64,000 nucleotides of DNA from Dimorphilus gyrociliatus (taxonomy: Eukaryota > Animalia > Annelida), in the NCBI GenBank assembly GCA_904063045.1, contig CAJFCJ010000003.1:992001-1056000 (forward strand). The letters are read 5' to 3'. Under the pieces are notes generated by a model. It saw nothing but the letters and a program-made list of their open reading frames with translations, was not told the origin of the DNA and did no database searches. The translations under genes were made by a program, and so were the position numbers. Shown in pieces: positions 3,500 through 36,373 of the stretch (its first letter is position 1; the number at the start of each line of letters is the position of its first letter).

Positions 3500-3556
3500 A
3501 TGGTGAAAATTGATCACTATTTACGTGAAAATGGGCGAAAAAAGGAGCAAATCTAA
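3500..3556 (+). promoter_or_regulatory. Out-of-frame upstream ORF (18 aa, MVKIDHYLRENGRKKEQI*) overlapping the HS6ST start codon
   Basis: ATG at 3500 in a different frame from the main ATG at 3531; stop TAA at 3554-3556, downstream of the main start. Whether it is in the mRNA is unknown. Confidence 0.45.
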
Positions 3557-13534: not shown

Positions 13535-15471
13535 ATGAAAATTCTATTGATTTTCTCAGGTTTTGTACATTTAGTTGTAAATTGAATATTAATTTAATGT
13601 TTTTTTTTATTGTAGTTCTCTTATTTGTTGGACAAGCTCTTTCCAACTATGTTTGTCCTCGTGACGAATATTTGAAACCTGTTGATGGCGCGTTTGCTGA
13701 TCCTAATAATTGTGGAATCTTTTATCATTGTACAAACGGTACTGCCTACGCTCAACAATGCCCACCTGGTTTACATTTTACAATATTGAGAAAAAATTGT
13801 CAATTCTTTACTTGTGTTGATCCAAAAGATGCCGATTGCCCTGGAAACAATTCCGTAAACGATGCAGAGTTTAGACCATGTTCTGAAAGTACACCGGTCG
13901 CCCTCAATTCGGATCAAGCTTGTTACAGCAAGGATAATGAATGTCAAATCACAGTGAATGGAACTTTTCCGAATAAGAAAGATTGTAGACAATACTATCA
14001 TTGCGTAAATGGAATCGCTTGGCCTCAACAATGTCCCAATGGACACTACTTCAGTCCATCATTAAATGTAAGAGATTGTAATTCAAAGTTATGCGTTCCA
14101 CTGGAAGAAGCACAGTGCAGCATTAACGGTAATTGGTCAACTTGGTCTGAATGGGAACAATGCGAGCCATCATGTGGTGATGGTATTAGCATACGTCGAC
14201 GAAGCTGCACCAATCCTCCTCCTTCTAATGGAGGAGCAAACTGTGAAGGTAGCGAATACGACATCAAACCCTGTATTAGTGAACCTTGTAGACTCTTGTC
14301 TCAGCCATCTTTTATGGTTGCCCAAAGAAATCTTGACACATATTCACAGGGAATCATTCGTTGGAGTAAAGTATGGTATAATTTTCAAGATCTCTTTGAT
14401 CCCGAAAAGAATAGCTTAAATATTTCTGAGAGCGGGTTTTATATTTTATCATTGTCTGCCGCTTTAGCTTCACGCCAAGGAATTACATTTAGACAAACAA
14501 CCCCTCAAAATAATGGTCTATATAGGAGAGCTGATGGAAATAATATTTATGAAGAGGATATGATATCTCAAACAGGAATTCATTTTTTAACCCGACTTAG
14601 CTCACCATTAATTCGTCAAACTTCTTCTTCAACTCGCCTATTCAGCTCTTTAAATGGTAGAGAAACATCTTGGTCCGGTTTTAAATATGAATCAAATAAC
14701 GTTCTCTATGCGGGTACTCTTAGTTCCATAATCTATCCTTCAAAGTTACGTTTGGAGAGAATTGCCACAATTAGGGGCTTTTCCCAATCTGATAATAAGG
14801 AAGACTTTAAAACGTCAGAGGGTGGTTGGTATTACATTAATTTTGGAGTGGGTTTCTATCAAAATCGAATGGCCCAAATTGCTCTTCAAATTAACAATGA
14901 AGTTCAATTTAAGAAGACATTAATAAGATCACATACCAGTTACTCGACCCGTGACCAAGGATCTAGAGGATTAGTTGTAAGACTAAATTCATCGGATACC
15001 ATTGGTTTACGTTTCATCAGCGGTGTTATTTATTCCGGAAATAGCCTAGTAACATATCTAACAGCTTGCAAACTAAATAGTTCAGATGGCTCTCCTCTAT
15101 TATACGCCTATAGAAAAAATGACTTTTCGTCATCCCAATTCTCATCATTAACCTATAATACTACTGTTATTGATACTACAAATTCGTGGAATGGTGAATA
15201 TTATACCGCAAATATATCAGGCTTGTATCATGTCGATATCTCTATTGGTCTTCAGTCGAGAAAAGATGCTCATTTAAGAATATATGTAGACAATGAAGAA
15301 GTTTTATCACTCCTTCGTTATTCAAGGCTTCATTCAGGTATCGATACAATATCTAGAACAGGACTAGTTAAATTGAAAAGAGGCTCTAAATTGCAAATAA
15401 AAGCAAATGGTGATTTAGCAAGTGATAATAAAGAATTAATATCGATAACTATATTTCTAATATCGCAATGA
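13535..15471 (+). CDS. Copy A: secreted 2xCBM14 - TSP1 - 3x gC1q protein, 626 aa; join(13535..13559,13616..15471)
   Basis: Spliced signal peptide MKILLIFS|VLLFVGQALS with a 56-nt phase-1 intron. Two peritrophin-A-like Cys domains (C..FYHC..QQCPPGLHF), a TSP1 repeat (WSTWSEWEQCEPSCGDG..RRRSC), and three C1q-like segments (PSFMV..GFYILSL; GWYYINFG..SRGLVVRL; GLYHVDISI..SRTGLVKL). TATATAAA at 13456. Confidence 0.9.
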
Positions 15472-15799
15472 ATATCCTAATATAAATATATAATAAATGA
15501 TAATATAATCTTAATATACTCTGTTAAAATAGTTTATTATTTAGTTATTAAACGTTAAAAAAGCCTATTCTACTTTTCCATACTACTGGAGTTTGAATAA
15601 TAAATACCCAATCTCTATTTTAAATAACAATGAAAATACAATTGTTACGTTTTCAGAGTCTGAGCTACTATTATAGTTTTCTTCAAAGACGTTAAACGGA
15701 GTATGAAAATATTCAAATACTCTTCATTTTGCTATAACATAATTTGATAGATAATTCTTTTTCTGTTACCCTTCATATATCAACTGTGTTTGTATATAC

Positions 15800-16420
15800 C
15801 TATACATCCTTTCAAATAGGTTCATAGATTTTCAATGGGATTTAGACCAAAACTCTGGGCTGGCTAATCTCGCAGGTATTTTTTCTTGTTTTTCCTTAAG
15901 TATTACAGGATACTTTTTAAAGTATGGCATGTTGCTTCATCTTGAACTAGCACACACTATCTTTTACAATATGATCTCTGATAAATCTCCTGATATTTTG
16001 AGAAACTAAGGTTGCTTTTATACAAATCCCCCCTCTTCTACCATCATTTTTTATGGAACCCCATCTTTATAGATATGTATAGAGAAGCATTTGCCTCTCA
16101 TGCATACTCAAATAGAAGAGCCTTTTTGGAAACGTTTTCCTATTAAGGAAATGTTTTTTTTTCAAAAGAGGTTTTTAGCTGCCACATAGCCTCTTAAGTC
16201 ATCTTTCCTTAATATCCTATTGACGATGGAAGTGAAATCCAAAGTGAGATGCCACCAAAACTCATTTCGTGAACCAGAAGGGGGTTTCTTTTGGATATTA
16301 GGCACAATTTTCTTTCGTGCCACTTACTTAACTTGAGAACCTTGAGTGTTATCGGAAGATTTTCTATAGTGAAAAACTTCTGAAACTTTTCCAAATCTTT
16401 TCAGCACACCTCAGCAATTT
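15800..16420 (-). mobile_element. Decayed Tc1/mariner (IS630-Tc1) transposase remnant
   Basis: Minus-strand translation across stops and frameshifts gives, in the correct order, KLSKWHERKL..KRNP, IVNRILRKDDLRGYVAAK, WGSI..KYQEI, VQDEATCHT and *PAQSFGLNPIENL*TYLK. These match Tc1 motifs (LRG..AAKKP, VWG, QDNAPCH, WPxQSPDLNPIENLW). No terminal inverted repeats identified. Confidence 0.8.
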
Positions 16421-17256
16421 AATTTAAAGATATCCCTTCTTTAATGCTATCAAATAACGAATTGCTTTATTAAAAAAACTGTTTTGACAAGGTAAATAGT
16501 ATCTAAAACGGAATGGATAGAGCGCTTTCCATCCTACTTTTTACCTTATATAACAAGTCTTATCCATCGAATTAGCATAATCTAATTTATAATGTAAATT
16601 TAATGCTCTTATCATAAGATCTTACTTAATAAAACACGTTGATATTAATGCGCCTTATAGATAAATATCGAAAGTATAAAATCAGCAGAGTCCAACGTTC
16701 TATTAAATTTATAAATCTGTTGCAAAATTTTCTAATTCTTATTAAATCAACCACTGCAGCAATGAAAATAGCATATTATGAAAGATGTCCTGTAAAATTT
16801 GTATAGCCAATCATGAAGCAAATATTTATTATTAGATGGATAATCAAAATTGATTAGTCAGCAATAAAATGATAATATATGAAGTATAAGGAAAGAAAGA
16901 TGAACAATTGAACAATTACACTGGAAAGTGTATATGTAAAAAGACCTAAAAAGAGGATTAATCATACGGTGAAGAACTAGAACTACTAAGATAAATAAAA
17001 CACTTTTACCGTTTTTAAAAACAAGACTATCAATTGATAAACACTCTCACATGTAATTTAGAAACTGAATAAAAATCAGAAAATTCAAGCCTCACTGCTT
17101 AATTAGCATAAAAACGTATTACATTCTTATTAATATTCATAATTTTCTACCTGATCTTCATACTTTTTCTAAAATAGTATTTCTCTTGATCGATATTACA
17201 TATTAAGAAATATTCAAGTGTAGTACAGTTACGTACATTTCTCTTTAGAAGTTGCA

Positions 17257-17288
17257 TTATCTGCCTTATCGCTGCTATTTTATGATAA
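17257..17288. promoter_or_regulatory. Three GATAA cores upstream of copy B (mirrored upstream of D)
   Basis: TTATCT 17257, CTTATC 17265 and TGATAA 17283, about 80-110 bp upstream of TATAAA at 17367. The AT-rich background lowers significance. Confidence 0.35.
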
Positions 17289-17293
17289 CCTAA

Positions 17294-17299
<6 letters not shown>

Positions 17300-17335
<36 letters not shown>
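17300..17335. repeat. (AT)18 in the copy B promoter
   Basis: Seen directly; ends ~30 bp before the TATA box. Confidence 0.95.
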
Positions 17336-17338
<3 letters not shown>

Positions 17339-17401
17339 TCTGACAATCAACTACTCCGAAACATTTTATAAAGTGAGCTAAAAGAAGTAAAGACAAAAAA
17401 A

Positions 17402-19387
17402 ATGAAAATTCTTCTTTTAACCATTTTCGGTAAAGTATTTAATTAAATAAACATATGAACAATATTATCTAATAAAAAGTTAATGCTTATTCAATGTGTC
17501 TTTTTTATAACAGCGTTCCTTTCAATCGGTTTCTCTATTCAATTTCAATGTCCGTTAAATTCGGATTTACAACCAATTGATGGAGCATTTGCCGACCCAG
17601 AATTTTGTGGTGTATACTATCATTGTATAAGCGGTACTCCTTTCCCTCAACAATGCCCTCCAGGACTCTTTTTCACCGTTTCTCTAACCAACTGTGAATA
17701 CTCAACTTGTGTAGAACCTGAAGAAGCTGAATGTCCAGGTGGAAATTCTACACTTATCGTTAAGAATCAAGATTTTCGTCAATGTTCTACTGAACCTGAC
17801 GAGGTGATGTCTTTTGAAGAACCATGTTATATGAAGAATTCGGATTGTGATGGAAAAATGAATGGAACATATCCAAACAATAATGATTGTAGACAATATT
17901 ATCATTGTTATAATGGTCTTTCTTGGCCTCAGCAATGTCCAGATGGATATTTTTTCAGTCCATCATTAAATGTTCGAGATTGTACTACGAAAATGTGTGT
18001 AACAATTGAAGAATCCGAGTGTCCAATGCCAGGAGGATGGTCTGAATGGTCAAGTTGGTCGGATTGTGATCCATCCTGCGGTGATGGTCTTCGAACTCGT
18101 ACAAGGAGTTGTACAAATCCGCCACCAATGAATGGAGGCGAAGATTGTCCTGGAAATTCAGTTGATATAGATTTGTGCTTTAATCCACCTTGCGGTGTAG
18201 TCAAAGAGCCAGCATTTATGGTATCAATGACAAGTCTTGTATCTCTTTCTCGTGGTACTGTCAAGTGGCATCGAATAAATATTAATAATGGCAATCTTTT
18301 TAATGCTACAACAAATTCATTAAATGTTAAAGATAGAGGATTTTTCTTCAGTTCTATAACAGCAACGACACAAAGTTTAGGAGGTGTGTATTTTGTAGAC
18401 GAAGGATCGGGCATTTCTTCTGCTTTATACAAAAGAAAAGATCGTATTGATCTGCGAAATTCTGAAACGTTATCCAAATCGGGCACCTACTTTTTCTCAT
18501 CTCCTTCAAATAAAAAATATTTTCACGAAAATTCAGCCGCCAGTGTAGTTGGATCGGTATCAAGCAGTGATACAGCATGGACAGCATTCCGATATGAAAC
18601 AAATAATGCATTTTTTGTTTCAACAACTTCAGCATTTTTTGGGACTGAAAGAATGATACCATTCAATAGAATAGTATCGCTTCGTGGCTTTGCTATGGAT
18701 CCAAATAGACAACGATTAACTGTCTCAACTAAAGGTTGGTATTTTATAAATATTGGACTTGGATTTGAATCTAGGAGGGCCGCAAAAGCATCTTTTGTTA
18801 TTAATGATCTCAATAACAAACCCGGTTGTGAGATAGGGAGAAGTGATACTAGATATGTTGGTAACAATCAGGCATCAAGAGGATTTATAGTAGAACTAAA
18901 TCCTGATGATAAAATTGGTTTGAAGTTAATAGAAGGACGAGTGAGATCACTTCTTTTTTATACTTATATGACTGGATTTAAACTAAACGCAACTAGTGAT
19001 AGTCCCGCATTTTACGCTTATAGTAGTGTTAGTCAAAGTATAACAACGAGAAGGAAACTAGCATTTGACACAGTCGTTTTAGATGTGTCATCAGGATGGA
19101 GTACAATTGATAATACATACAAAGTGGCTGTATCAGGTCTCTACTATATTGAAATATCAGTGGGTGTGTTTCCTCAAAGTCAATCCGTTGTCGAAGTTGT
19201 GGTTAATAATGATGTAAAGTTGGGAATGCGTTATTTATCAACTGCACATAACGCGTATGATGTAAAAAGTAGAGGAGGTTTGCTTCAAGTTCAAGAAGGC
19301 GATTCAATTTCTATTGAAACTTCAAATCCCGCTTATAGTGATGAATTAAAATTGACTTCATTCACTTTGTTGTACGTTTCACCATAA
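17402..19387 (+). CDS. Copy B: secreted 2xCBM14 - TSP1 - 3x gC1q protein, 633 aa; join(17402..17429,17514..19387)
   Basis: Signal peptide MKILLLTIF|AFLSIGFS with an 84-nt phase-1 GTAAAG..CAG intron. Same domain order as copy A. TATAAA at 17367. Confidence 0.92.
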
Positions 19388-19696
19388 TATATAATCTGCT
19401 TAGGTCGTCATATTAAGTTGTGTATTATTTGATATTGTCAGATTCAAATTATTTAATTCATTATCTGAATCAATTGTATGTTTTGTTCGTAAAGATGTCG
19501 ATTCTAAAGGAAATTGAGATGTGGAAATTTTCTATTATCGCTTGATAACATACACTCTTTTTTGAACTATAGAAACTTTTAAACTATTTAATAGAATGCT
19601 CTCAGTATTATTGAAATTCTTCTATTTAACCAAAGTTGAGATGAAACCTTTTGATATAAGGACTATAAACTTTCGAAATACTGGAAATTTAAGAAA

Positions 19697-20525
19697 AGAA
19701 TTAACTTTAACGAATGCAATTTATTCAATGCTACGAGGAACTCAATCATTTTTAGAGATATAGAATTCTACTTTATGTGTCTTTCAAGAACAAACACAGG
19801 TGGAGGATATCTATATTTTACAGCAAATCAATCCTTTTCATATGGACTTACGAAACCAACAATGCTTTTTTTGTTGCTAGGACTTCGGGACAAGAGATTC
19901 CAGTCCTGCTTTCTTTTAGTCAAATTATAGCTCTTCGTAGTCTTAGTATTGATTGTAATCGACAGATGTTAACCGTCTGGACTAAAGGCTGGTACTCTAT
20001 AAGTATTGGAGTTGGATTTGTAACTAGAAGATTAACTAAACTTAGCATGGTGATTAATAATAATACTAGCAGGCCAGAATATGATTTAGGTATAGATTAT
20101 ACGAATCCAAGTAGCTATACTCAAGCATCCAGAGGATTCATTGTTGAGTTAGAGAGTTCTGACAAAATTGGTTTGAAATTGCTTGAGGGTCAAATAAGGT
20201 CACAGCATTTGTACATATATCTAACCGGATTCAAGCTAAATGCTACCAGTGACAGTCCTACATTTTATGCATACAGTAGCGTTAGTCAAACCATAACATC
20301 CAGAGGGCAAATAGCATATGATACAGTTGTCTTAGATACAACTTCATCATAGAGTTCAATAGATAATATATATAAAGTTGCTATATGAGGTCTCTACTAT
20401 ATTGATATGTCTGAAGGCATTATTCCCGGAACTCAATCAGTAGTAACTGTTTTGGTGAACAATTCTGTGAAAATGAGAATGCGTTTTTTGGAAACAGGAC
20501 AACGGTCTTATGGTATGCAGAGCAC
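19697..20525 (+). pseudogene. 5'-truncated pseudogene containing only C1q-domain sequence of the same family
   Basis: Begins RINFNECNLFNATRNS (cf. B RININNGNLFNATTNS). An internal deletion with frameshift near 19845 jumps to YETNNAFF..GWYSISIG..ASRGFIVEL. Premature stops at TAG 20350-20352 (W in B) and TGA ~20386 (S in B). Homology fades near 20525. No signal peptide, CBM14 or TSP1. Confidence 0.9.
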
Positions 20526-21033
20526 CTGTTTATCTTATGATTTTTAACTTATAGTATTTTTTGAACTTTTTTCTATAGATTAATAATACAAAGTATGGAA
20601 TTAACTTTCATTCAAGATTAATAATAAATCATACGATGTTATATATAGAAAATAGCTCGTATCATTTTAAGTGTAAAAGAATACACAAAAAGAACCATTT
20701 CTTGACCTTTTTCATATGATATATCATCAATCAATCTAGTTTATAATTAATTATCGTTAAAACTAATAACTTTCAAGAATTGTTGCGTAATTGAGAAATT
20801 TCTTTTGTTTATTAGTAGATAATTATAATATATTCATAATAAGCAAACATCTTAAATTTGATAATTATTTGTTTGGTAAAAGAAAACGCACACATTCATT
20901 AATATCATTATCTTTACGATAGTGTAGATATGATTTAAGATTCAGTAGTGTTTTTCGTAGACGGACTTGATAAGATTTAAATGATGTTTAATTGTTACAA
21001 AGAAGTAATTCAAACGATTTACAACAAACTATT

Positions 21034-23012
21034 TTAAGAAGAAATGTAAAACAAAGTGAATGATGTCAATTTTAATTCATCACTATAAGCGGGATTTGAA
21101 GTTTCAATAGAAATTGAATCGCCTTCTTGAACTTGAAGCAAACCTCCTCTACTTTTTACATCATACGCGTTATGTGTAGTTGATAAATAACGCATTCCCA
21201 ACATTACATCATTATTAACCACAACTTCGACAACGGATTGACTTTGAGGAAACACACCCACTGATATTTCAATATAGTAGAGACCTGATACAGCCACTTT
21301 GTATGTATTATCAATTGTACTCCATCCTGATGACACATCTAAAACGACTGTGTCAAATGCTAGTTTCCTTCTCGTTGTTATACTTTGACTAACGCTACTG
21401 TATGAAAAGAATGCAGGTTTATCGCTTGTGGCAGTTATCTTAAATCCGGTCATATATGTTAAAGCCCCTGAATTCGATCTACTTGTTCCATCAATTAGTT
21501 TTACGCCTATTTGATCATTAGCATTCAGTCGAACAATGAATCCTCTGGAACCTTGAGATTCACCAACGTAATTGCTGCTTTTTCTGCCGAGGCTGTACTC
21601 TGGTCTAGTAGCATGATCATTAATAACAAAAGACAATAATCCAGGTGAACGTGATGAAAATCCACTGCCCAAATTTACAAAATACCAACCATCCGTTGAG
21701 ACAGTTAATCTTTCAGGAGATTGTCTTGCTAAACCACGTAATGTTAATACGCTATTAAATGCTATAAGTTTTTCTCTACCCAAAATTGACGTAGTGCTGG
21801 CTACATAGAAAACATTGTTTGTTTCATATCGAAAACCTGTCCATGAGGTTTCACTACCTTCAGGTGATCCAGTTATTAAAGAAAATCTAATTGCATCATA
21901 TCTTGGTGAATTTATGGTTGTATACAATTTTGTTCCTGCCCTGGTTAAGGATTCTGAATATGCGGCAGTAGAATCCCTTGTGAATCTATGAAGAAAGTGA
22001 CTTACAGCTGATCCTCTTGATGAAACCTGAAATGAGGTTGTCCTTCTTATTGAAAATGTCAGTGAACCATAGTAAAACCCGGTTTCATTAATTCTCAAAG
22101 AATTTGTGAGAATATTAAAAACATTACCACGATTGTGATTAATTCTCTGCCATCTAATTATTCCTGCACGTATTACATCGTCCGATCTCATTGATACCAT
22201 AAATGCTGGCTCTTTGACTACACCGCAAGGTGGATTAAAGCACAAATCTATATCAACTGAATTTCCGGGACAATCTTCGCCTCCATTCATTGGTGGCGGA
22301 TTTGTACAACTCCTTGTACGAGTTCGAAGACCATCACCGCAGGATGGATCACAATCCGACCAACTTGACCATTCAGACCATCCTCCTGGCATTGGACACT
22401 CGGATTCTTCAATTGTTACACACATTTTCGTAGTACAATCTCGAACATTTAATGATGGACTGAAAAAATATCCATCTGGACATTGCTGAGGCCAAGAAAG
22501 ACCATTATAACAATGATAATATTGTCTACAATCATTATTGTTTGGATATGTTCCATTCATTTTTCCATCACAATCCGAATTCTTCATATAACATGGTTCT
22601 TCAAAAGACATCACCTCGTCAGGTTCAGTAGAACATTGACGAAAATCTTGATTCTTAACGATAAGTGTAGAATTTCCACCTGGACATTCAGCTTCTTCAG
22701 GTTCTACACAAGTTGAGTATTCACAGTTGGTTAGAGAAACGGTGAAAAAGAGTCCTGGAGGGCATTGTTGAGGGAAAGGAGTACCGCTTATACAATGATA
22801 GTATACACCACAAAATTCTGGGTCGGCAAATGCTCCATCAATTGGTTGTAAGTTTGAATTTAATGGACATTGAAATTGAATGGTTAAGGTAAATGAAAGA
22901 ATTACTGCACAAGAAAAATAATATAAAGATTAAATACAAAATGAATGAAAATATTTCTAGTTTGTTTTGAACGCGAATTCATACCTGAGATGAATAGAAA
23001 CAGATTCTTCAT
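21034..23012 (-). CDS. Copy C (mosaic): secreted 2xCBM14 - TSP1 - 3x gC1q protein, 632 aa; complement(join(21034..22904,22985..23012))
   Basis: Signal peptide MKNLFLFIS|VILSFTLT with an 80-nt phase-1 GTATG..CAG intron. The frame is open upstream of the track's GTG start at 22614. TATATAA at 23047..23053. Confidence 0.92.
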
Positions 23013-24417
23013 GGCGTTTATTACAGTTCACTTAGTTGTACTGTTCTTATATAGCTATTTTATCTGTTGGTAATGATTAGTAAACTTTTTTATCTTTGAC
23101 TACAGTATATAGTTAATAGAATGATATTATATATCTTTGAGGTCGTAGCCTTAATAAAGCTTATCCTTAAGTAATATTTTTCCATTTATCGTATATAAAG
23201 CCACTTAAATTGTTATTTTAACAATGTTGGTAGTTTTTGTTTTTGAATAATTATTTTTCAGGATGTGTTAAGAAATTTGCAACAATTTGTCAAGTGTGTT
23301 TGCTTAGCTGTGTGGTTTTTTCTAGAAGTAAGGTTGTTGACATGTAGTCATTCTGTACCTCTTATCACGTGTTATAGAGTTCCTCTCTCCTTTAGATTAT
23401 AATATAATAAATATAAAACTCAGTGATTAGCATTATTACTTAAGATTAGACGAAGAACTTATCTATTTCACAAGTTTCTGTACCAATTTCTGACACAAAA
23501 AATGTCATTTTATAGTTACATTTTCTTTTAATCTAATCAAAATTAAAAGTCAAGTCATTCAGGAAGGCATCTCTTGCTTTTTTTTGTAATTAACAATTAA
23601 CCAGAATTTTAAGTTTTCAATATAATAAATTACCAGTTTAACTTTAATTACCGGCCAAATGAATTGATTTCTAAGCAAAAAACTTAATTTTATCCAAATA
23701 GTTGGTCTAATAATACCCTTTTCCTAACTGTTTTTTCAAGTAGTCACGTTTAAATAAAACATCTCCTTTTAGAGAAGGGTTAGTATCATTTCCAAATCTT
23801 CTTCAATTTATATTTTGTCCTATCTATTTACTATACTTTTCAGTAAGGATTTAAAATCATTATCTAAACTTTCTTTACTTTTTAGATAGTAATTTAAATG
23901 TCTGTTACATCTTCTTCAATTACATAAATTTGTACTATAGTGTTCGGAACCAGAAAAAAAATTACACATTACGTTTTGTTCCCTTTTCATTATATTAACA
24001 TGACAATAGGCATCTAGGGCAGCAAGCTCTTTTTAGTTGTCTTAAATTGACCTACCAAAATAGTGCAGTAGTTCAAAATGACAGTTGTAGTTGTGGCGAT
24101 GAAAAAGCATTTCAGTTTTCAGTATTTCGGAAGTATATAGTCCTTATATCAAAAGGTTTCATTTCTCCACTTTGGTTAAATAGAAGAATTTCAATAATAC
24201 TGAGAGCATTCTATTAAATAGTTTAAAAGTTTCTATAGTTCAAAAAAGAGTGTATGTTATCAAGCGATAATAGAAAATTTCCACATCTCAATTTCCTTTA
24301 GAATCGACATCTTTACGAACAAAACATACAATTGATTCAGATAATGAATTAAATAATTTGAATCTGACAATATCAAATAATACACAACTTAATATGACGA
24401 CCTAAGCAGATTATATA

Positions 24418-26403
24418 TTATGGTGAAACGTACAACAAAGTGAATGAAGTCAATTTTAATTCATCACTATAAGCGGGATTTGAAGTTTCAATAGAAATTG
24501 AATCGCCTTCTTGAACTTGAAGCAAACCTCCTCTACTTTTTACATCATACGCGTTATGTGCAGTTGATAAATAACGCATTCCCAACTTTACATCATTATT
24601 AACCACAACTTCGACAACGGATTGACTTTGAGGAAACACACCCACTGATACATCAATATAGTAGAGACCAGATACAGCCACTTTGTATGTATTATCAATT
24701 GTACTCCATCCTGATGACACATCTAAAACGACTGTGTCAAATGCTAGTTTCCTTCTCGTTGTTATACTTTGACTAACACTACTATAAGCGTAAAATGCGG
24801 GACTATCACTAGTTGCGTTTAGTTTAAATCCAGTCATATAAGTATAAAAATGAAGTGATCTCACTCGTCCTTCTATTAACTTCAAACCAATTTTATCATC
24901 AGGATTTAGTTCTACTATAAATCCTCTTGATGCCTGATTGTTACCAACATATCTAGTATCACTTCTCCCTATCTCACAACCGGGTTTGTTATTGAGATCA
25001 TTAATAACAAAAGATGCTTTTGCGGCCCTCCTAGATTCAAATCCAAGTCCAATATTTATAAAATACCAACCTTTCGTTGAGACAGTTAATCGTTGTCTAT
25101 TTGGATCCATAGCAAAGCCACGAAGCGATACTATTCTATTGAATGGTATCATTCTTTCAGTCCCAAAAAATGCTGAAGTTGTTGAAACAAAAAATGCATT
25201 ATTTGTTTCATATCGGAATGCTGTCCATGCTGTATCACTGCTTGATACCGATCCAACTACACTGGCGGCTGTATTTTCGTGAAAAGTTTTTTTATTTAAA
25301 GAAGGTAAGAAAAGGTAAGTGCCCGATTTGGATAACGTTTCAGAATTTCGCAGATCAATACGATCTTTTCTTTTGTATAAAGCAGAAGAGATGCCCGATC
25401 CTTTGTCTTCAAAATACACACCTCCTAAACTTTGTGTCGTTGCTGTTATAGAACTGAAGAAAAATCCTCTATCTTTAACATTTAATGAATTTGTTGTAGC
25501 ATTAAAAAGATTGCCATTATTAATATTTATTCGATGCCACTTGACAGTACCACGAGAAAGAGATACAAGACTTGTCATTGATACCATAAATGCTGGCTCT
25601 TTGACTACACCGCAAGGTGGATTAAAGCACAAATCTATATCAACTGAATTTCCGGGACAATCTTCGCCTCCATTCATTGGTGGCGGATTTGTACAACTCC
25701 TTGTACGAGTTCGAAGACCATCACCGCAGGATGGATCACAATCCGACCAACTTGACCATTCAGACCATCCTCCTGGCATTGGACACTCGGATTCTTCAAT
25801 TGTTACACACATTTTCGTAGTACAATCTCGAACATTTAATGATGGACTGAAAAAATATCCATCTGGACATTGCTGAGGCCAAGAAAGACCATTATAACAA
25901 TGATAATATTGTCTACAATCATTATTGTTTGGATATGTTCCATTCATTTTTCCATCACAATCCGAATTCTTCGTATAACATGGTTCTTCAAAAGACATCA
26001 CCTCGTCAGGTACAGTAGAACATTGACGAAAATCTTGATTCTTAACGATAAGTGTAGAATTTCCACCTGGACATTCAGCTTCTTCAGGTTCTACACAAGT
26101 TGAGTATTCACAGTTGGTTAGAGAAACGGTGAAAAAGAGTCCTGGAGGGCATTGTTGAGGGAAAGGAGTACCGCTTATACAATGATAGTATACACCACAA
26201 AATTCTGGGTCGGCAAATGCTCCATCAATTGGTTGTAAATCCGAATTTAACGGACATTGAAATTGAATAGAGAAACCGATTGAAAGGAACGCTGTTATAA
26301 AAAAGACACATTGAATAAGCATTAACTTTTTATTAGATAATATTGTTCATATGTTTATTTAATTAAATACTTTACCGAAAATGGTTAAAAGAAGAATTTT
26401 CAT
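24418..26403 (-). CDS. Copy D: secreted 2xCBM14 - TSP1 - 3x gC1q protein, 633 aa; complement(join(24418..26291,26376..26403))
   Basis: Inverted near-duplicate of B with the same exon structure; 14 amino-acid differences. TATAAA at 26433..26438. Confidence 0.92.
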
Positions 26404-26466
26404 TTTTTTTGTCTTTACTTCTTTTAGCTCACTTTATAAAATGTTTCGGAGTAGTTGATTGTCAGA

Positions 26467-26469
<3 letters not shown>

Positions 26470-26501
<32 letters not shown>
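26470..26501. repeat. (AT)16 in the copy D promoter
   Basis: Paralogous to the (AT)18 of copy B, two units shorter. Confidence 0.95.
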
Positions 26502-26507
<6 letters not shown>

Positions 26508-28546
26508 TTAGGTTATCATAAAATAGCAGCGATAAGGCAGATAATGCAACTTCTAAAGAGAAATGTACGTAACTGTACTACACTTGAATATTTCTTAATA
26601 TGTTGAACATTAGATTTTCTCTTGAGAGAGTTTGCTTTTTATATATACAATATATATACGTATGCATACATATATGCAGTATATATATATATATTTTTTA
26701 ATAAATTAATTAAACTACTATTTATCATCATGAGCTTCAAATACTCCTTATTTATTGACCTTTTTTTATCAATAATCTAAAGATTATAAACATTTTATTA
26801 AGTTCTTTGAGGTTGCGACCTCTGAATCATTCATGATTATAATATACTTAGGTCGCTTTCTTTCATGTGATTGCTATAGACCCATTTCGAGTTCAAGTAA
26901 TTTAGTTTGATTATCTCCTTCGATAACAAAAACTAACGATATATATTTTTTGACGCCGAAATAATTGGTTAACTATTTTTGATTTATTCCTTGATAATAG
27001 TAAAGGAATTTCCAGATTTTTTGACATCTCTGTTTCTCTTATGACAGACCACTTTCAGTATCTGAAATTAGCGACAGCTAATATAATTTCATATATAAAG
27101 AAAGATAATGCAATTGCATCTTGATCATTTATAGAAAACGATTCCATTCTCTTCAGGAAAATGTAATAAAATGAAAGAAACACGAAAAATTGAAACTTTT
27201 AACTTAATGACTATCAAAAAGATTTTATTCATTCATTATTAAAATTGTTTGAAATATAGATGAGCAGTTTGAATTTCTTTCAGATATTCTTTTAGGAGAA
27301 AAGAACAGTTTCACCAAGGAGATACATTTTAAGTGGCGTATTTTTCATTCAGCCAGCTTTTTTCAAAAAGCTTCTTTAGAGAGTTGTTTTAATGTAATTT
27401 GAACTAACTAATGTTAACATCCCTATATATTCATATAGTTAAAGACATTTCAACGGTAGTTGGCAAAGTTAAAACTACTTTTCAAACATAAACAATTTGT
27501 CATTTAATTTTCCATCTTGTTGTTTCAAAATCTGTTTCCATACTCCTTCTATCTTATCTCAATCGTTGACCTTTTTATGTTTATTTATAGTGTTTTCTCA
27601 ATGCATAGAGAATTATAAAAATACTTTATTATTAATAAAAAAATTAGATGACCGTAATTAAACTATGGCAATTTCTGTCACAAGTTACCACTTTCTTCCT
27701 GTCTCCTACGCACTGTATCTCTTTCTCTCTTCATTTGTCTCTGTCTCTCTGTCTTTCTTTCTGCTGTGAGACCTACCATATGCGTAATATTTCTGTCCTG
27801 TTTTTATTATACTTATTTATACCTTTTTCGAACCTGATTCAATACAAACTAGTATATTATCGATACAATTTAAATATTCATTTTGAACGAGTATTTTCTC
27901 TTCTTCGAACGAAAAATTCATAAATATACTAATTTAATTCATATTGATAGTTAATTAAACAAAGTTAAACTACTCAATTTCGTATGCCCTATTTGTCCTT
28001 TTAAATATTATCTTTATGTATTTTTGATATGGACTGACTCTTTCAAAGTTTAAAAAAATTGGCTAATGTCGCATATGGTTTTTTCTCTTAATACTAAATT
28101 TAATATGGCTATTTTTAGATACAAACAAATGCTAACTAATAAGAGGAAGGGACATATTTTAAATAAGATATAAATATAATAATACGTTTGTATAAGAAAT
28201 CAATAAAAGCAATAAATTGACAAACATTTTCATTAGCATTCCTATGCTGTTTATAAATTTATATTTACATACATAAGAAGACTGATAGAGGGTTGAAGTT
28301 TATGTAACACATATGAAAATCTTATTCATTTTTTATACAAATCAAGTACGAAAAGTATACGATACAGTGTAAGGCCATATAATAATTTTTAGCAAAGCAT
28401 AGGCGGATATCTGGGAACTTTATGATATGTTACATATGGAAAATTTAACAGAAATATATATTTACAACTAAATATAAACATTTCAGAGAGTATATAAGCT
28501 GAAAAATTTTATTGAGAGACAGTCCGATCTTGACTGAATAATAAAG

Positions 28547-29421
28547 ATGAAAGTTCTAGCTTTACTTGCTCTTGTTGCTGTTGCCGTTCAGGCTAAACCA
28601 CGTGATCCTGCTTTCTTGACCACTGAAGTTGGTTACATCGTTGGAGGTGAAGATGCTTCCCCTGGTGAATTTCCATGGCAAGTATCTTTGCAAAGATGTT
28701 CTGGTGCTTCATGCAGCCACAACTGTGGAGCCATCGTCATGAATGCCGACTGGGTTTTGACTGCTGCCCATTGTATCCAAAACCCATCCCTCGCTTCTCA
28801 TAGATTGGTCTTCGGTCTTCACAGACGTAGTGATGAATCTGGAGCTCAAGCTAGAACTCCATCCATTGTTAGACCCCATCCAGATTGGATCAATGACGGT
28901 AGCTTGGGATTCCCCAACGATGTCGGTGTCATGAAAGTCTCTGAATCTGTTGTTCTTTCTGGAAATGTTGCTGCAGCTACTCTTGTATCTTCATCTGTTG
29001 GAAATTTGGCCGGACAAGCCTGTGTCATCTCTGGTTGGGGACGTACCGCTGGTGGAGCACCTTTACCCGATGTTCTCCAAAAAGCCGACACCCGTGTCTT
29101 GTCCACTGCTGAGTGCCAAGCTCAAGGAATTCCTCAAGCTGATGATGACTTCCATATTTGTCTTAACAACGATGCCGGAACTACCAACTCCTGCAACGTA
29201 AGTCTAACATCTTACAAAACATTTTGTACAAATTCTTAATATAAAATCTTTTCCAGGGTGACTCTGGTGGCCCATTGAACTGCCCAATCGGAAGCGGTGG
29301 CTCTATTCAAATTGCTGGTGTTACATCTTTCGGTATCATCTTCTGCCCACCAAACAGACCAGCTGGGTATGCCCGTGTTTCTTACTACCGTGACTGGATC
29401 GATTCCAACTCCCAAGATTAA
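28547..29421 (+). CDS. Secreted S1A serine protease (chymotrypsin/elastase-type pocket), 271 aa; join(28547..29197,29257..29421)
   Basis: Signal peptide, propeptide ending GY|IVGG, HNCGA, TAAHC (His57), PNDVGV (Asp102). A 59-nt phase-0 intron precedes GDSGGP (Ser195). Residue 189 is Asn, not Asp. TATATAA at 28491, AATAAA at 29447. Confidence 0.95.
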
Positions 29422-31453
29422 GTAGCTGTGTAAAATAAGGAAACCCAATAAACAATCGTCTTAATGATAAATAAATATTAAAATCTTAAATTTAAACTTT
29501 AAAGTTTAAACTTTCTCTTAAAAGAATTATTATATTAATATATAGTTTAATGAAACTTGTAGTCTTTATACTTTGAACCTATAATTTTGGTTCGCATCTC
29601 TCGCGTAATCGCTTAAATTTACCGTTTTTGACTTGCTCCATAAATAAACTATAATTCATTATAAATAAGCTATAAAGATATCACTTGTTATTCAATAGGG
29701 ACTTTATCATTCATCTCCCTCTATAAAATGTTGAGTAAATTCGTTTTGAACCATTTAGGAGCCAGCTTTTTCAACATTTTCGTTGTTCTTCATATTCAAA
29801 TAGCCTTTTCATTCGACATTATTCAAGTGCAATTTGATCTATTCTCACCTGTTTTTCGACCAATGCTTCTCTTTTCAACAAAACCATTGGTTGCCATCAT
29901 CCCTATTATTCTGATCTATGTATAGGCTAAATCCTGAAATAAGTAACATCTTGAAGTATGATCGCATTAGACTAGACGCTCTTTTTTTGTCTTATACAAA
30001 TATATAAAGCATATTATACTTTGTAGAGAGATATGAACTAGATATATTATTCAATTCTAAACTCAACTTGGATAGACCCTTTTCTATAATATAGTCAGAA
30101 TCATTGACTTACGATATCTTACTTTATAAAAGGCAGCTGTAAAAATGATACTTTTGTTCAGCAAAAGTGAACTTATATCTGTAGTTTAATATGAAGTAAT
30201 AAATTTAAATAATCAATTGGAAATTCAACATAAATGAATGTAGTTTTTTTTTGGGGTCGTTAAATATGAAAGATTTTCACCTATTTACTAATCCATAGAG
30301 ACTAGGAATTTGTATTGTCTCTTATATGTAAAATCATTTTGTTTCCATGGTATTAAATTAATAATGGAACAGAATTTATATATAATTGACCAATTTCAAC
30401 TGGTGGTAGACAAGTGTATGAACGAAGTGATACCTAACTGAGTATTTTCTTAAGAGAGAGAAAAACATTTAGAAATCTTTTCAAGATTAAACTTTCATGC
30501 TTTAAGCATATTAAATACAAACATTTCCCCTAAACTGTTCTTTTTGCTCCACTGGAAACAGTTAACATGAGACTGATGGCTTTAAAGTATAAATAAATGA
30601 TATAATAGCTAAGAACTATGAAGAAAACGTCCACAAATATACGTTTTAACCCTAGCCCTAACCGCCCAGGTGACAATCTACTTTGCATTTTAAAGAATCT
30701 GATCCTTAGTTTAGCCCATAATTGGAATGCGATTAGGTTTTAATTTTTCTAACCCTAGAGATGCTCCTAACCAAGCCTCAAAGTTTACCCTTAGTGGATA
30801 TTTTCTTTCTTCTCTCTCAAGCTTTACTCTTACTCGATAACGACTTTGTGAAGAAGGATATGAACATATCTCCAAATAATGAATGAAATAAAACTTTCTA
30901 ATTGCATGCAATGTAAAAATAGCAAAATATTCTATTAATCAAATAATAATTGATATTCTTTCATATGATAATGAAAGGTAAAAGAACAACCATCTGGTGC
31001 AATTTCTGTCTTGCTAAAGTTACAATTTATAATAAATCATTATTCATTGTTGATTCTATGTTATCTTTATGTATTAGCAATAGATAAATTCGTACCAAAC
31101 AAGAGATAAAAATCCTTCTCTAATAACCAAAAGCCTGATAGCTTAATAGGTTTTGCATTGAAAAAATAGAAATATTGACAATCATGTTTAAACGTTTAAG
31201 CTCCCTTCCTTAATATACAATCAATATTGCAACTACAAGTCTATATTTTGCCCCTTTTCATGAATGAAAGTATATTTCGCGATAATGATGTTAAAAATGA
31301 ATAGAATTTTAATTATTTACTACGCAATGTGAAAAAACATGCGGTTTATATGAAATTTGAGTATGAAAGTGTGTGAAATAACATTTCTTAAAGAGTATAA
31401 AAGCGCTTGTGTCTCTTCAGTCTTTACTCAATTTTGGTTGAATTCAAAACATC

Positions 31454-32331
31454 ATGAAAGTTTTAGCTGTTCTCGCTCTTATTGTAGTGGCCTCTCAGGC
31501 TAGACCAAGTTCCAACAAAGCTAATTTGCAACCTTTTGTTGGCCGTATCATCGGAGGAGAAGACGCAGCACCAGGCGCTTGGCCATGGCAAGCATCTCTA
31601 CAAAGATGCACCATCGGATGTTCTCACAGTTGTGGTGCCGTTGTTGTCAATGAAAACTGGGTTCTAACTGCTGCTCATTGTATCCAAAATCCTGATCCTT
31701 CCGGATACAGAGTTGTTGCTGGACTTCACCGCCGTAGTGACGAATCTGGTGCTCAACCTAGAGATGCTTCCCAAGTTATTTCCCACCCTGAATTCATCCA
31801 AGATGGAAGTCTTGGATTCCCCAATGATGTTGGTGTTGTCAGAGTTTCTTCTGCTTTTGATTTGAGTGCTTCAAATGTAGCTGCAGCTACTCTTGTCCCA
31901 AGCAATGCTCCAAATTTCGCTGGACAAGCTTGTACTATCTCTGGTTGGGGTCTTACCGTTGGAGGAGGATCCGGTTTACCTGATGTTCTTCAACAAGCTG
32001 ATACCCGTGTTTTATCCACCGCTGATTGTCAAGCTCAAGGAATCCCACAAGCTGATGATGACTACCATATATGTATCAATGATGACGATTTGGAAACCAG
32101 CTCATGCAACGTAAGTTTAATTCATATAATTCTACAGAATTCTTACTAATTTCAAACATATTTTAGGGTGACTCTGGTGGCCCATTGAACTGCCCAGTTG
32201 GAGCAAATGGCGCTTACCAAGTTGCTGGAATCACCTCTTTCGGTATTATTTTCTGCCCAGAAGATACCCCAGCCGGATATGCTCGTGTATCTACCTACCG
32301 TCAATGGATCGATGACAACATCAGCGCTTAA
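31454..32331 (+). CDS. Secreted S1A serine protease paralogue (chymotrypsin-type pocket), 273 aa; join(31454..32110,32167..32331)
   Basis: Signal peptide, propeptide ending GR|IIGG, TAAHC, PNDVGV, 56-nt phase-0 intron before GDSGGP. Residue 189 is Ser. TATAAAA at 31396, AATAAA at 32365. Confidence 0.95.
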
Positions 32332-34339
32332 GAAGGAAAAGACTACAATTTATCAAATGATATAAATAAATTGTTGCCATTAATAAAACGACCCAAAGAT
32401 TAAACTAAACTTTTCGAACTAAGTCTATTCAGAGAATAATGTTTTAATTTAAAAAACAATAACATCAATTTACAAAAACACCTGAAAATTATAAAAGAGA
32501 AATTATTAATGAGAGTCTTTCACTTCTCTTTTACAGACAGAAACATCTCAATCTATAATTTTAAAGAATTTTACATATCTTGGTTTATAGCACCTTTTTA
32601 GCTGTTTACTTGTCAACAAACAACCTAAAACTTTCCAGTTAAATTAGGAAAGTTGATTAGTAACTATATAATTCTTTATCAAGGGGAAACCGGCTGAAAT
32701 CAAAGTTCTTTCCACTTCCGTTTAAATCAAAAAAAGATACGTTAATTTCGTTTGAATTTAAGCTTTGAATAACCTAAGGTTTAAAAAGAATTATGGTGGG
32801 CCATAACTTGAAAAGCAGCTCTAGCTTGACCTTCTTTACATTGATGATAGGTCTAGAAAGTGATCCATAAATTACTTATCATTTTATACACTCCAATATT
32901 GACCTCAAATAAACTGATAATTCTAAGAGTAAATTAAATAAATGTTAATATTTAGGTCTTCTTTACCTCTCAATATAACTTTTTAATAGTAGAAGTAACT
33001 GAAAATTATCAAGAAATCAAAAAATGTTGAGCAGCTGTGAAAAATCCAATTATAATTTTCATACAAATAGACTCTTGAAAGTATGGGAACAAGCATACTT
33101 ATTGTTAACAAATGACATCATATTCATAACAAAAGTTAATCATTAAACAATTCAATCTTAGCCGGCAATAAAAAAAAACACTGAATGAAATCTTTTGTAA
33201 CTCTTATCCATTTCGCAATGACCGATAAGGCTAATTTGCAGGAAAATGAGGATTATTGACCAGTGATGTTGGTCCAATCATTGGTTGAGTAGACATTGCT
33301 CCAGGCAATATGCTCTAGAAAATATTTTTGCAAAGACGTTCTAGTGCTTAATGTGTACGTAGGTTTGCAGCCCATTCTACTTGTATCATATATGGTATCT
33401 GGCAATTCCCAATGATAATGTGAAATTCGATGAAGCTCTTGCTCTTTCTGCAAATGTTTTTTCATAGTGATGATAGTTGAACTAGCTTATACAACGTAGC
33501 AAAAACGTATATTTTCATACTTATTAACTACTCAATCAAATTCAACAGAGTTTACTAAACCGTCTGCTGCCCACCATATGGACTATCAGGTTAAGCTCTT
33601 ATTTTCTTATACAGACCTTGAATCAACATTCTCTCCTCGATTTCGTGAATTGAAAAAACACAGTTTACTTAAATAAACTAACAATTAGTTTTAACTATTA
33701 TATAATACGGTATATATTACAGATGTTAATAGAGAGACTATTAGAATTAGGATGAAGTCTCTAATTAGTACGTGTAGAACAAATCAATAATCCTTACAAA
33801 AAGTTTGTTATTCGTTTAGCAAGAGAATTTTACAACCTAACTACCAATTATGAATATATTATTTACTTTACATATTACATCTTAAACAATTATACATAGT
33901 ATTTGTGTTGTAAGGATGAAGTAGCTTGTCTCAGAATTCTCCTAATAGTTATTAATTGAAAGAGAATCTTGGTCAGAATGATCTGAATAAAATAACAGTG
34001 AGGAAAACGATGAAAAAGATGGTATAGTTAACATATATAGAGGCTAAATCAACTAACAATTTTAAAGGAGGAGAGTCAGTCTAATAAGCAACATTCACCC
34101 TTAGAGAATCTGAATATGCTTCACTCCAATATTATATATGTAAATAAGGTTGAAGAATATTAATAAAAGAAATTATATACAGATAAAAAGTCTTAGGTCT
34201 CCATTAATAATATTGTATATTTTCTATATTTCGCCTTAAAACGAACAGAAATAAACTGAAATCGTCACTATTAAACAATTTTAATAGTTTATAAATTCTA
34301 TTTTCATTCTATTAAAAATTTCGTTTTTCATAAAACTCT

Positions 34340-36265
34340 TTAACTTGATACGATAAACATTGTTAGAGAAATAACTCTTCTATTATTACTATTTAAGCCA
34401 TCTGTAGCTTTAATTTGAACTCTATCTTTTTCCTTCAAATTCAATAGACCAGACCTTGACATAGTATCAAAGTTATTATGCAAATTCGAAGTACGTACTA
34501 GTGAAAGTCTCCTTTGTCCATTGACATGAATTTCTAAATTAAGTCTTGTATTTGGTGAGCTTCCAGCGTTTACTTCTATAAAATATAAGCCAGAGTATTC
34601 AATTTCGTATTCGCTGGTTGAACTATGCCATATATTTCCATTGTTAAAAACCACATCATCGTATGAAACATTTGATAGAGATGAGCTAAAAAAATCCCCA
34701 GAACGGCGTACGTAGAGAACGGGCGTGAAAAACGTAGTATTCAATTTCATTGCCGTCATATACGTATATAAATTATTTGTTGACCTAATAGCACCAGACA
34801 ATAAGCGAAGACCTATGACGTCATTTGCTTCCAAGAAAACGACTCCACCCCTTGACGCTTGGTCATTTTGGAAGTTGTTCGATTGGCTTCTGCTTAATGA
34901 GAAATTAGTTTGTGGCTCGTTATTAATAGTCAGTACTACATCTGACGTTGTTCTAGCTTCAAAGCCAGTTCCGATATTGATATAATACCATCCACTATCA
35001 GCAACTCTATAGGAATAAGAATTAGGAACGGGTGCAGCCCCTCTTAGAACGATTATTTCTTGCAATCTGATATCTCCTGGATTATTTTCATTAAGTGAAC
35101 TACCGCAAAATAGTAAATTTCTCGATTCGTATCTAAAAGCTAACCAAGATGTTTCGTAGCCATCCTCTCTACTAAAAATAGGAGTGCTAAAAGTTTCAAA
35201 TTCAGCGTAGGGATTAAATAATCTATTCAGAGAAAATATGCCACTTCTCGAAAATGTATCCACTCCATTAAAAGATGATCCAGTTTGTCTAAAGAGTGCC
35301 GATAGTCTGCCGGTACCTTGTAGTGAAGAGTGATATCCATTTCCTGTGCTTGATCCTCCACTTAACGACATGTAATAAAAGCCATTTTCTTCAACCTTCA
35401 TTTCTGAATTGGATGGATTATATAGGTCCTTATTGTTAATTACAACAGAATTCCATATCATTTTTCCAGGAAGTAGAAAGGGAGAATTTCTATAACCAAC
35501 AAAAAAGGCTGGACTAGAACCAAAAGTACAATTTCTACTTTGACAGACTTCTATATCTGTTGACGATCCAGGGCATTTTGCACCGCCATTGGCTGGTGGA
35601 GGATTGTTACAACTTCTTTCTCGTATTCTGATACCAGTTCCACATTCTGGTTCGCAAGGGCTCCAACTCGACCACGAACTCCAGGAACCACCAGTTGGAC
35701 ATGCGGCATTTTCAAGCGGAACACATATCCTTCTATCGCAATTCCTAGTATTCAAGCTAGGATTAAAGAAAAAACCAGAAGGACATTTTTCAGCATACAC
35801 TCTATCAGAAAAACAATGAAAGTATTGAGTACAATCCGTATTATTAGCAAAAGTTCCATTTTGTTGACAAGTTTCGTAGGACTCTTCTGAAGCTTTGGCA
35901 TCGAAATCATTGAAAAATTTAACTTCATTTTCCTCAGATTGATTATAGCTTGGACAATTCGATTCGGCGGGCGAAGTACACATAGTAAAATGACAATCCT
36001 TATGAGCAATTGTAAAGTGAAGACCGGGAGGACACTGCCTTAGGTGAAACGTACCGTTGATACAATGATAATAATTATTACAATTTATTGGATCGATAAA
36101 AGCTCCATCGATATAATTAAAATCATCATCAGTTGGGCAAGAAAACTGCGACAAGGCTCCGTGCAAGAGGATAAAAGCTAATATTAAAATAACATTAGGA
36201 TTAATACAGAATTAAAGATTATATAAATAAAACTTACCGAAAGTCAAAAGGATAAGACCCTTCAT
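34340..36265 (-). CDS. Copy E: secreted 2xCBM14 - TSP1 - 3x gC1q protein, 621 aa; complement(join(34340..36177,36238..36265))
   Basis: Signal peptide MKGLILLTF|AFILLHGALS with a 60-nt phase-1 GTAAG..TAG intron. Same domain order, but a divergent paralogue. TATAAAT at 36305..36311. Confidence 0.92.
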
Positions 36266-36345
36266 GTTTCTCAGGCTGATTAAGTTGTAGCAGCTTGCTT
36301 CAATATTTATACTCTTTCATCCATAGATACAAAATTACAAAATAC

Positions 36346-36373
36346 CTTATCTTTATCAATTTATTATTGATAA
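36346..36373. promoter_or_regulatory. Three WGATAA sites upstream of copy E
   Basis: CTTATCT 36346, TTTATCA 36352 and TGATAA 36368, 35-65 bp upstream of the TATA box. Confidence 0.4.

Follow-up and report, generated by a model that had tools for sequence, protein, structure and literature searches.

Clustered CBM14-TSP1-C1q proteins of the annelid Dimorphilus gyrociliatus: a putative gut-tethered recognition family

What might an animal do with a secreted protein that strings together two CBM14 domains, a TSP1 repeat and several C1q domains, and does such a protein belong to any family with a name? The question is raised by a gene cluster in the tiny marine annelid Dimorphilus gyrociliatus (assembly GCA_904063045.1, contig CAJFCJ010000003.1), where a stretch of 64,000 nucleotides (positions 992,001-1,056,000; hereafter the window, with its own numbering) contains five intact copies of such a gene, lettered A-E by position. 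A sequence-only reading of this DNA had seen in them a VCBP-like logic built from different parts. As a description of how the proteins may work this is still the best reading, and we give about one chance in two to a gut-secreted, tethered, lectin-like recognition family that is VCBP-like in its working. As a statement of membership it fails, since the proteins lack Ig domains and their modules come in another order.

Architecture and the modelled single-chain head

In all five copies a signal peptide is followed by two CBM14 domains, one TSP1 repeat with an intact WxxWxxW motif and three globular C1q (gC1q) domains. Each gene comprises a first exon of 25-28 nt and a single long exon with one stop, separated by a phase-1 GT-AG intron (56-84 nt) within the signal peptide, and encodes 621-633 aa. 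Copy A (DgyrCDS2147) occupies 13535-15471 on the plus strand (exons 13535-13559 and 13616-15471; 626 aa), with domains starting at 13654 (CBM14a), 13942 (CBM14b), 14128 (TSP1) and 14305, 14695 and 15091 (gC1q-1 to -3). Copy B lies on the same strand at 17402-19387 (exons 17402-17429 and 17514-19387; 633 aa), the corresponding starts being 17549, 17846, 18032, 18209, 18602 and 19001. The minus strand carries C (DgyrCDS2148) at 21034-23012 (exons 23012-22985 and 22904-21034; 632 aa), D at 24418-26403 (exons 26403-26376 and 26291-24418; 633 aa) and E at 34340-36265 (exons 36265-36238 and 36177-34340; 621 aa), whose second exon is a 100% match to DgyrCDS2151. Public gene calls in the cluster are limited to A, C, two proteases and E; the transcribed-looking copies B and D are missing from the annotation.

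A tblastn search over the window recovers these five full-length copies and a single remnant. The claim that five paralogues and a pseudogene share one domain order holds for the intact copies but not for the pseudogene, which is a remnant of the head only (about 19694-20523, plus strand; parts of gC1q-1 to -3; 57% aa identity to B). What is left corresponds to residues 263-308 and 365-595 of B and contains a deletion or frameshift near 19835-19842 and stops at 20350 and 20386; a signal peptide, CBM14 and TSP1 could not be detected in it. The pseudogene probably sits within the 3' untranslated region (UTR) of B, the first AATAAA after B being at 20623.

Pfam profiles run on exon 2 of each copy call CBM_14 twice (expectation value E 3e-20 to 4e-16), TSP_1 once (E 3e-10 to 1e-12) and C1q over two to three stretches (E 8e-12 to 3e-17), each of which passes the curated cut-off; the hidden Markov model check proposed with the sequence-only reading thus came out in its favour. 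The third gC1q was revealed by an AlphaFold model and a fold search, which uphold the C1q/TNF fold for all three heads. The earlier observation that transmembrane segment and collagen stalk are missing also stands: past the signal peptide no hydrophobic 19-mer in A-E scores above 1.4, and no Gly-X-Y run was found. Nor does the AlphaFold model contain a long helix past the signal peptide that would indicate a coiled-coil stalk, and the Pfam scan of the five copies gave no match to an Ig family.

In the AlphaFold model of copy A three ten-stranded sandwiches follow the TSP1 repeat. Modelled alone, the head reaches a predicted local distance difference test score (pLDDT) of 91.9 and a predicted template modelling score (pTM) of 0.92, with the three gC1q domains packed as a pseudo-trimer. 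Along its entire length it superposes on an engineered single-chain adiponectin trimer (Z 46.4, root-mean-square deviation 2.3 Å, 367 residues), on an engineered single-chain C1q head (Z 44.9) and on a Cbln1 single-chain trimer; individual gC1q chains are matched with Z 18-19.5. As modelled, the chain would be a natural single-chain C1q pseudo-trimer in no need of a collagen or coiled-coil stalk, which would account for the missing stalk. A chordate ESM Atlas cluster of 908 aa, labelled 'TNFR-Cys domain-containing protein', also matches the whole triple head (template modelling score 0.83), which suggests another natural single-chain C1q/TNF pseudo-trimer.

The heads of A-D are cationic (isoelectric point 9.4-9.6) and the N-terminal parts acidic (4.1-5.0). 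Loops are assigned as apical or basal according to the standard gC1q topology; in the family alignment the apical C-D and E-F loops are 10-14% identical and vary most in length, while basal loops are 14-36% identical and mostly fixed in length. The Asp before strand F of gC1q-3 in copy E aligns with the Asp of C1QL 'NYDY', which corresponds to D214 of C1ql1, an axial Ca2+ ligand (PMC12749725). This axial position is acidic in 18/28, 16/27 and 15/25 members for gC1q-1, -2 and -3, respectively, which is roughly 60% in each domain, so that only some of the copies can plausibly be expected to bind Ca2+.

In model and alignment, each CBM14 domain carries a seventh cysteine at the tip of an extended hairpin. 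The two extra cysteines are absent jointly in two relatives and present in all others, and this joint loss suggests that an inter-domain disulfide, predicted as Cys70-Cys163 in the numbering of A, locks the CBM14 pair. The C2-C6 cysteine pair of the CBM14 core is lost together in four members. Two extra cysteines, one of them in a C-terminal GCL motif, occur in gC1q-3 of many members outside the A-E clade and in none of A-E.

Duplication, conversion and relatives

Copies B and D are carried on the arms of a 2.49-kb inverted duplication with 98.8% identity: the left arm (17198-19687, plus strand) holds B and its promoter, and the right arm (24116-26603, minus strand) holds D, which is 98% identical to B at the aa level. 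The pseudogene starts 7 nt past the edge of this duplication. Twelve of the 21 coding nucleotide differences between B and D fall in gC1q-1 (binomial p 0.0003), and their ratio of 10 non-synonymous to 2 synonymous changes rests on too few sites to prove positive selection. Part of this domain forms a variable patch (18485-18535, plus strand, codons 334-350; partner 25270-25320), for which no donor was found elsewhere in the window (best ungapped match 33-34/63). The pseudogene was considered as a silent donor cassette and rejected, because it has lost the stretch corresponding to B 309-364.

Copy C is a mosaic relative to B, 99% identical over 22188-22881 and 94% over 21041-21463. Its CBM14 pair and TSP1 repeat are 99-100% identical to those of B, synonymous sites included, and gC1q-3 is 94% identical, while gC1q-1 and gC1q-2 share only 38% and 54% of their aa (ratio of non-synonymous to synonymous rates, dN/dS, 0.71 and 0.34). 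The pattern is, at the sequence level, the signature of recent gene conversion at both ends. The units DgyrCDS3193 and DgyrCDS3194 on another contig have the same pattern at the protein level, with tethers 89-97% and heads 63% and 38% identical. Across the family the median identity is 46-55% for CBM14 and TSP1 against 23-31% for the heads.

The D. gyrociliatus genome contains at least 16 family gene models, including at least 11 beyond A-E. Relatives are also present in three further Logan sequencing sample sets; they have the same intron, interleave with the D. gyrociliatus genes in the tree and are probably from dinophilids. The family is thus one of Dimorphilus and probably of its relatives. 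An orthologue of E in a second species (64% identity) adjoins a trypsin-family gene in convergent orientation, as in the window; other family loci adjoin unrelated genes. At L005:14020-15427, beside DgyrCDS14774, a head-only relative of 440 aa consists of a signal peptide, a short acidic linker and three gC1q domains, and has the signal-peptide intron of A-E. The public models DgyrCDS14768, 9668, 14789 and 3193 (P0189, P0096, P0138 and P0188) resemble annotation fusions, a caspase or an unrelated N-terminus being fused to a family protein, or a single model covering two units; in its family part DgyrCDS14768 does not differ from DgyrCDS14767.

Database queries were exon 2 sequences or public protein identifiers rather than joined spliced models. 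No relatives were found in other named animals by what were weak searches, the head-only word searches returning two proteins each and missing known members; nor did any appear in a list of 150 matches dominated by TSP1 repeats. A metagenome scan gave TSP1-type matches only and no triple head, the ESM Atlas gave no feature match for the family, and tblastx of the whole window against the foreign loci matched at the protease only. No description of the architecture was found in the searched literature, which left out most subscription papers, and C1q and these genes are absent from the text of the genome paper and its supplements (PMC7854359). That paper counts nine expanded families, mostly local immune duplicates and not named in the text (PMC7854359), and the present expansion may be among them. 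The proteins are present in public databases without a name. The sequence-only reading had recognised no named family either; with none found in database or literature searches, the architecture is apparently unnamed.

Promoters, transcripts and neighbouring genes

Where the proteins are made can be approached through their promoters, in which GATA sites were chosen for test as markers of gut genes. The 300 bp upstream of eight family genes contain 24 WGATAA sites against 7.4 expected (p 1e-6), and the mean of 3.0 per family promoter compares with 0.8 in nine controls (p 0.005), although the controls are few and promoters of paralogues do not count as wholly independent. In an unbiased k-mer scan of family promoters GATAA and GATAAG ranked top after TATA-like words, and the excess declines further upstream. 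Five foreign homologue promoters have 3-5 GATA sites each, and E and its orthologue have three GATA sites and a TATA box at matching positions. In the window, the promoter of A (13318-13463, plus strand) has WGATAA at 13318, 13356 and 13418 and a TATA box near 13456; that of C (23046-23095, minus strand) has a TATA box near 23046-23053 and WGATAA at 23060 and 23090; and that of E (36304-36373, minus strand) has a TATA box at about 36304-36311 and WGATAA at 36347, 36353 and 36368. In the duplicated promoter of B and D a (TA)n microsatellite (17301-17335 and 26471-26501, with a length difference of 4 nt) lies between the GATA sites and the start. Annelid GATA456 is expressed mainly in gut endoderm and associated mesoderm (PMC2938726), and in D. 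gyrociliatus the coelom is reduced and a blood vascular system missing (PMC7854359), which makes the midgut the best guess; the GATA-rich promoters point to midgut expression, or to GATA-driven mesoderm.

Sequencing run X1 contains all sampled words of copy E. Its contigs, mapped to 19390-24110, remove the predicted intron of copy C exactly, one contig is joined at a predicted exon junction of the B/D type, and the run behaves as RNA; assembled contigs carry no information on level, strand or tissue. They cover the unique middle of C and the pseudogene remnant without differences and leave 20654-20969 empty. Independent contigs read across the inverted duplication at each of its two inner junctions, which establishes both B and D as real. 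An assembly artefact behind B/D or the mosaic C was rejected on these grounds, the contigs listed for this check not including the 22188 junction of C. One contig (22985-24196) links the 3' flank of D, via the spacer, to exon 1 of C, from which it is spliced into exon 2, and the first AATAAA downstream of D is found about 10 nt ahead of the ATG of C; read-through from D to C or overlapping UTRs are possible, the contig alone being no proof of a single transcript.

Two neighbouring genes encode secreted trypsin-family serine proteases outside the CBM14-TSP1-C1q family: protease 1 (28547-29421, plus strand, 271 aa) and protease 2 (31454-32331, plus strand, 273 aa), the latter convergent with copy E. 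Protease 1 has Asn at the S1 position and is hence not trypsin-specific, and protease 2 has Ser there and is chymotrypsin-like. Both resemble chymotrypsin/elastase, are 75% identical in nt over 680 bp and have TATA boxes; the promoter of protease 2 has a GAAAGTGTGTGAAA element in common with a protease promoter of locus L001, and that of protease 1 contains a CATATG E-box. A proto-complement link between the family and these proteases is unsupported: they are single-domain zymogens without CUB or CCP domains and have no GATA signature in common with the family.

Further out, a two-exon gene at 3507-6413, about 7 kb upstream of the cluster, resembles heparan sulfate 6-O-sulfotransferase (Sulfotransfer_2 match), and its nearness is probably a coincidence. 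A multi-exon gene at 39669-46764 has a proline-rich exon of 565 aa without a Pfam match, and an exon of a Na,K-ATPase beta subunit lies at 62700-63125.

Proposed role and known counterparts

How could such a protein work? Most likely it would be secreted constitutively in the midgut as a monomeric 68-kDa chain with a signal peptide and no anchor. Its three tandem gC1q domains are modelled to fold into one C1q-like pseudo-trimeric head, each face being free to differ. The head, cationic in A-D and most variable in its apical loops, may bind anionic surfaces of microbes or food particles, and the TSP1 rod would act as a spacer between it and the acidic, probably disulfide-locked CBM14 pair, which in turn would tether the protein to the gut lining through peritrophic chitin or a mucus glycan or protein. 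Microbes might thereby be trapped on the gut barrier, as is proposed for chordate VCBPs. Duplication would supply new head specificities that later become fixed, and gene conversion between neighbours, of which two loci have the pattern, homogenises the tether. A fuller version of this scheme is an independent annelid counterpart of the VCBPs: a GATA-driven gut family whose CBM14 pair, locked by a disulfide and bound to chitin, would present a set of asymmetric single-chain C1q heads at the peritrophic matrix, the tether being kept uniform by gene conversion as the heads diverge under selection. It would rank among the few expansions in the smallest annelid genome. This fuller version is fairly unlikely.

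Several observations weigh against a recognition role in the gut. The constant tether and variable head fit the earlier idea of a chitin anchor displaying variable C1q heads, but the anchor lacks the canonical chitin-binding aromatic in both CBM14 domains. Trp465 of CHIT1, two residues after Cys5, matters for chitin binding (PMC4844120), and the equivalent position is aromatic in only 1/27 first and 0/28 second CBM14 domains. Cys5 is here assigned from the hairpin register of the AlphaFold model; taking the extra Cys of CBM14a instead would place Phe/Tyr at the Trp465 site in 20/28, an assignment that is disfavoured. Other aromatics are conserved, namely Phe/Tyr in the first CBM14 hairpin and Trp in the second domain. 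Chitin-binding residues vary among CBM14 proteins, and some of these, such as Aplysia EHEP and Der p 23, show no chitin binding at all (PMC10619976); annelid peritrophic matrix does contain chitin (PMC6109156), and we put chitin binding by the tether at about even odds. Moreover, gC1q, CBM14 and TSP1 are found in structural matrices too, and GATA456 is mesodermal as well. GATA sites are missing from the promoters of the two neighbouring, presumably digestive proteases, and the family promoters yielded no NF-kB-like sites, on which ground NF-kB inducibility was rejected. A gC1q less conserved than Cys-rich domains is generic, and conversion may simply track sequence similarity, since gC1q-3 of copy C is also converted. 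Orthologous heads are under purifying selection (gC1q-1 of E is 71% identical to its orthologue, dN/dS about 0.1), which leaves an ongoing arms race in all heads unsupported. This conservation indicates heads that change after duplication and are kept from then on; their variability is mostly old, fixed divergence rather than the output of an ongoing diversification machine.

Could the proteins instead be structural? A cross-linker of extracellular matrix (peritrophic matrix, gliding mucus, cuticle or egg cocoon) would take no part in non-self recognition, its CBM14 pair and C1q head bridging polysaccharide and matrix proteins in the manner of collagen-X/otolin-type gC1q. CBM14 and TSP1 are enriched in a tubeworm tube proteome (PMC8476170), shell matrices commonly contain C1q and CBM14 (PMC6368272), and TATA promoters without NF-kB-like sites and conserved orthologous heads speak for it as well. 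Heads that are 23-31% identical and differ in their apical loops, in no fewer than 16 paralogues, however, represent diversity beyond what a scaffold needs, and a chain with just two CBM14 domains, no mucin stalk and no multimerising domain is poorly equipped for the task, in an animal that also lacks chaetae. D. gyrociliatus is not known to have a tube or shell, a further count against this unlikely explanation. Less likely again is a digestive helper in the gut lumen that binds food particles, so as to sort or agglutinate them, or else algal polyphenols and similar dietary inhibitors, and would thereby protect enzymes such as the two neighbouring proteases. The model for it is EHEP, the second-best PDB match of the CBM14 pair (E 4e-7), a protein of Aplysia digestive fluid with three CBM14 domains that binds phlorotannin and not chitin (PMC10619976); yet EHEP has no C1q head, and the head is the variable part here. 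The linkage of E to a protease is kept in the second species, and the GATA promoters and the missing chitin-binding aromatic suit a digestive role, but co-regulation is unsupported with proteases that lack the GATA signature, and loci elsewhere have other neighbours.

The polarity of the molecule might also be the reverse, the CBM14 pair seeing chitin of foreign origin, from fungi or diatoms, while the C1q head docks on host cell receptors or proteases, as in a humoral opsonin from GATA-driven coelomic cells. C1q/TNF heads often bind receptors (C1QL-BAI3, Cbln1-GluD2), the changes between B and D lie in the basal D-E and F-G loops and not at the apex, and the mesodermal side of GATA456 would allow for coelomic expression. 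A constant tether and a variable head nevertheless suit a head that meets the variable partner, and head-only relatives exist (L005); the reduced coelom and missing blood vessels leave little room for humoral action, and the neighbouring proteases, being single-domain, are not MASP-like. This is the least probable of the explanations considered here.

If the favoured gut-tethered recognition role is true, annelids evolved recognition tethered to chitin or mucus at the gut barrier independently, with a C1q head replacing Ig, in support of a convergent design of gut barrier immunity. Secreted C1qDC proteins of annelids are reported to be few (PMC8878817), yet this gene-poor genome has at least 16 mosaic copies. 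A natural single-chain, three-faced C1q head would parallel designs that have so far only been engineered, from vertebrate C1q and adiponectin, and the family is a ready set of variants for the study of gC1q specificity. The species has gut-bearing females and gutless dwarf males, which makes the gut hypothesis directly testable.

Among known systems, the gC1q jelly-roll domain of all five copies makes them C1qDC proteins, closest to the three-domain smultiC1q proteins of bivalves (e.g. HcC1qDC6, PMC5519582; class PMC6835236). Both have a signal peptide, several (in smultiC1q usually three) tandem gC1q domains and tandem gene clusters, and a three-gC1q mussel protein binds bacteria, lipopolysaccharide and peptidoglycan (PMC5519582). 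The smultiC1q class admits no further domain except an optional coiled coil, whereas here two CBM14 and one TSP1 precede the heads, in a single long coding exon and an annelid host; the head-only relative at L005 is of exactly the smultiC1q type. C1q-like proteins of types I and II differ in having a collagen or coiled-coil stalk before a single gC1q. Bivalve sSUEL/C1q and gastropod QREP (Ig-C1q) proteins (PMC6835236) are likewise lineage-specific mosaics of an N-terminal binding module and C-terminal C1q, but their module is SUEL or Ig instead of CBM14x2-TSP1, and the present family has three C1q per chain. In molluscan TSP1/C1q proteins (Mercenaria LOC123538063; an ESM Atlas 'hemicentin-1-like' cluster) the TSP1-gC1q junction is colinear with that of the family (36% over 106 aa, E 4e-20), which suggests that the TSP1-gC1q unit probably predates the family; these proteins have several TSP1 before each single gC1q, no CBM14 and no contiguous triple head. 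Properdin, made of six to seven TSP1 repeats only, is different again.

With vertebrate C1q, adiponectin, C1QL and CTRP4 the family shares gC1q trimer geometry and part of the axial Ca2+ site, at 13-19% identity; unlike them it has no collagen and is modelled as a natural single-chain pseudo-trimer. The six-cysteine peritrophin-A core is common to the family, peritrophins and Aplysia EHEP, from which it departs in the extended C-terminal hairpin, the co-varying seventh Cys, the fusion to TSP1 and C1q, and a position two after Cys5 without the exposed aromatic (Trp465 in CHIT1, Trp55 in tachycitin). The VCBPs of tunicates and lancelets (PMC4757023, PMC6109156) have two N-terminal Ig V-type domains and a single C-terminal CBM14, in place of the two N-terminal CBM14 and the TSP1 spacer seen here, and are of independent origin. 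Like the family, they are secreted without a membrane anchor (predicted here from the signal peptide and the lack of a second hydrophobic segment) and couple CBM14 to a diversified recognition module. VCBP-C tethers bacteria to chitin (PMC6109156), and tethering of microbes at the gut barrier is the working proposed for both.

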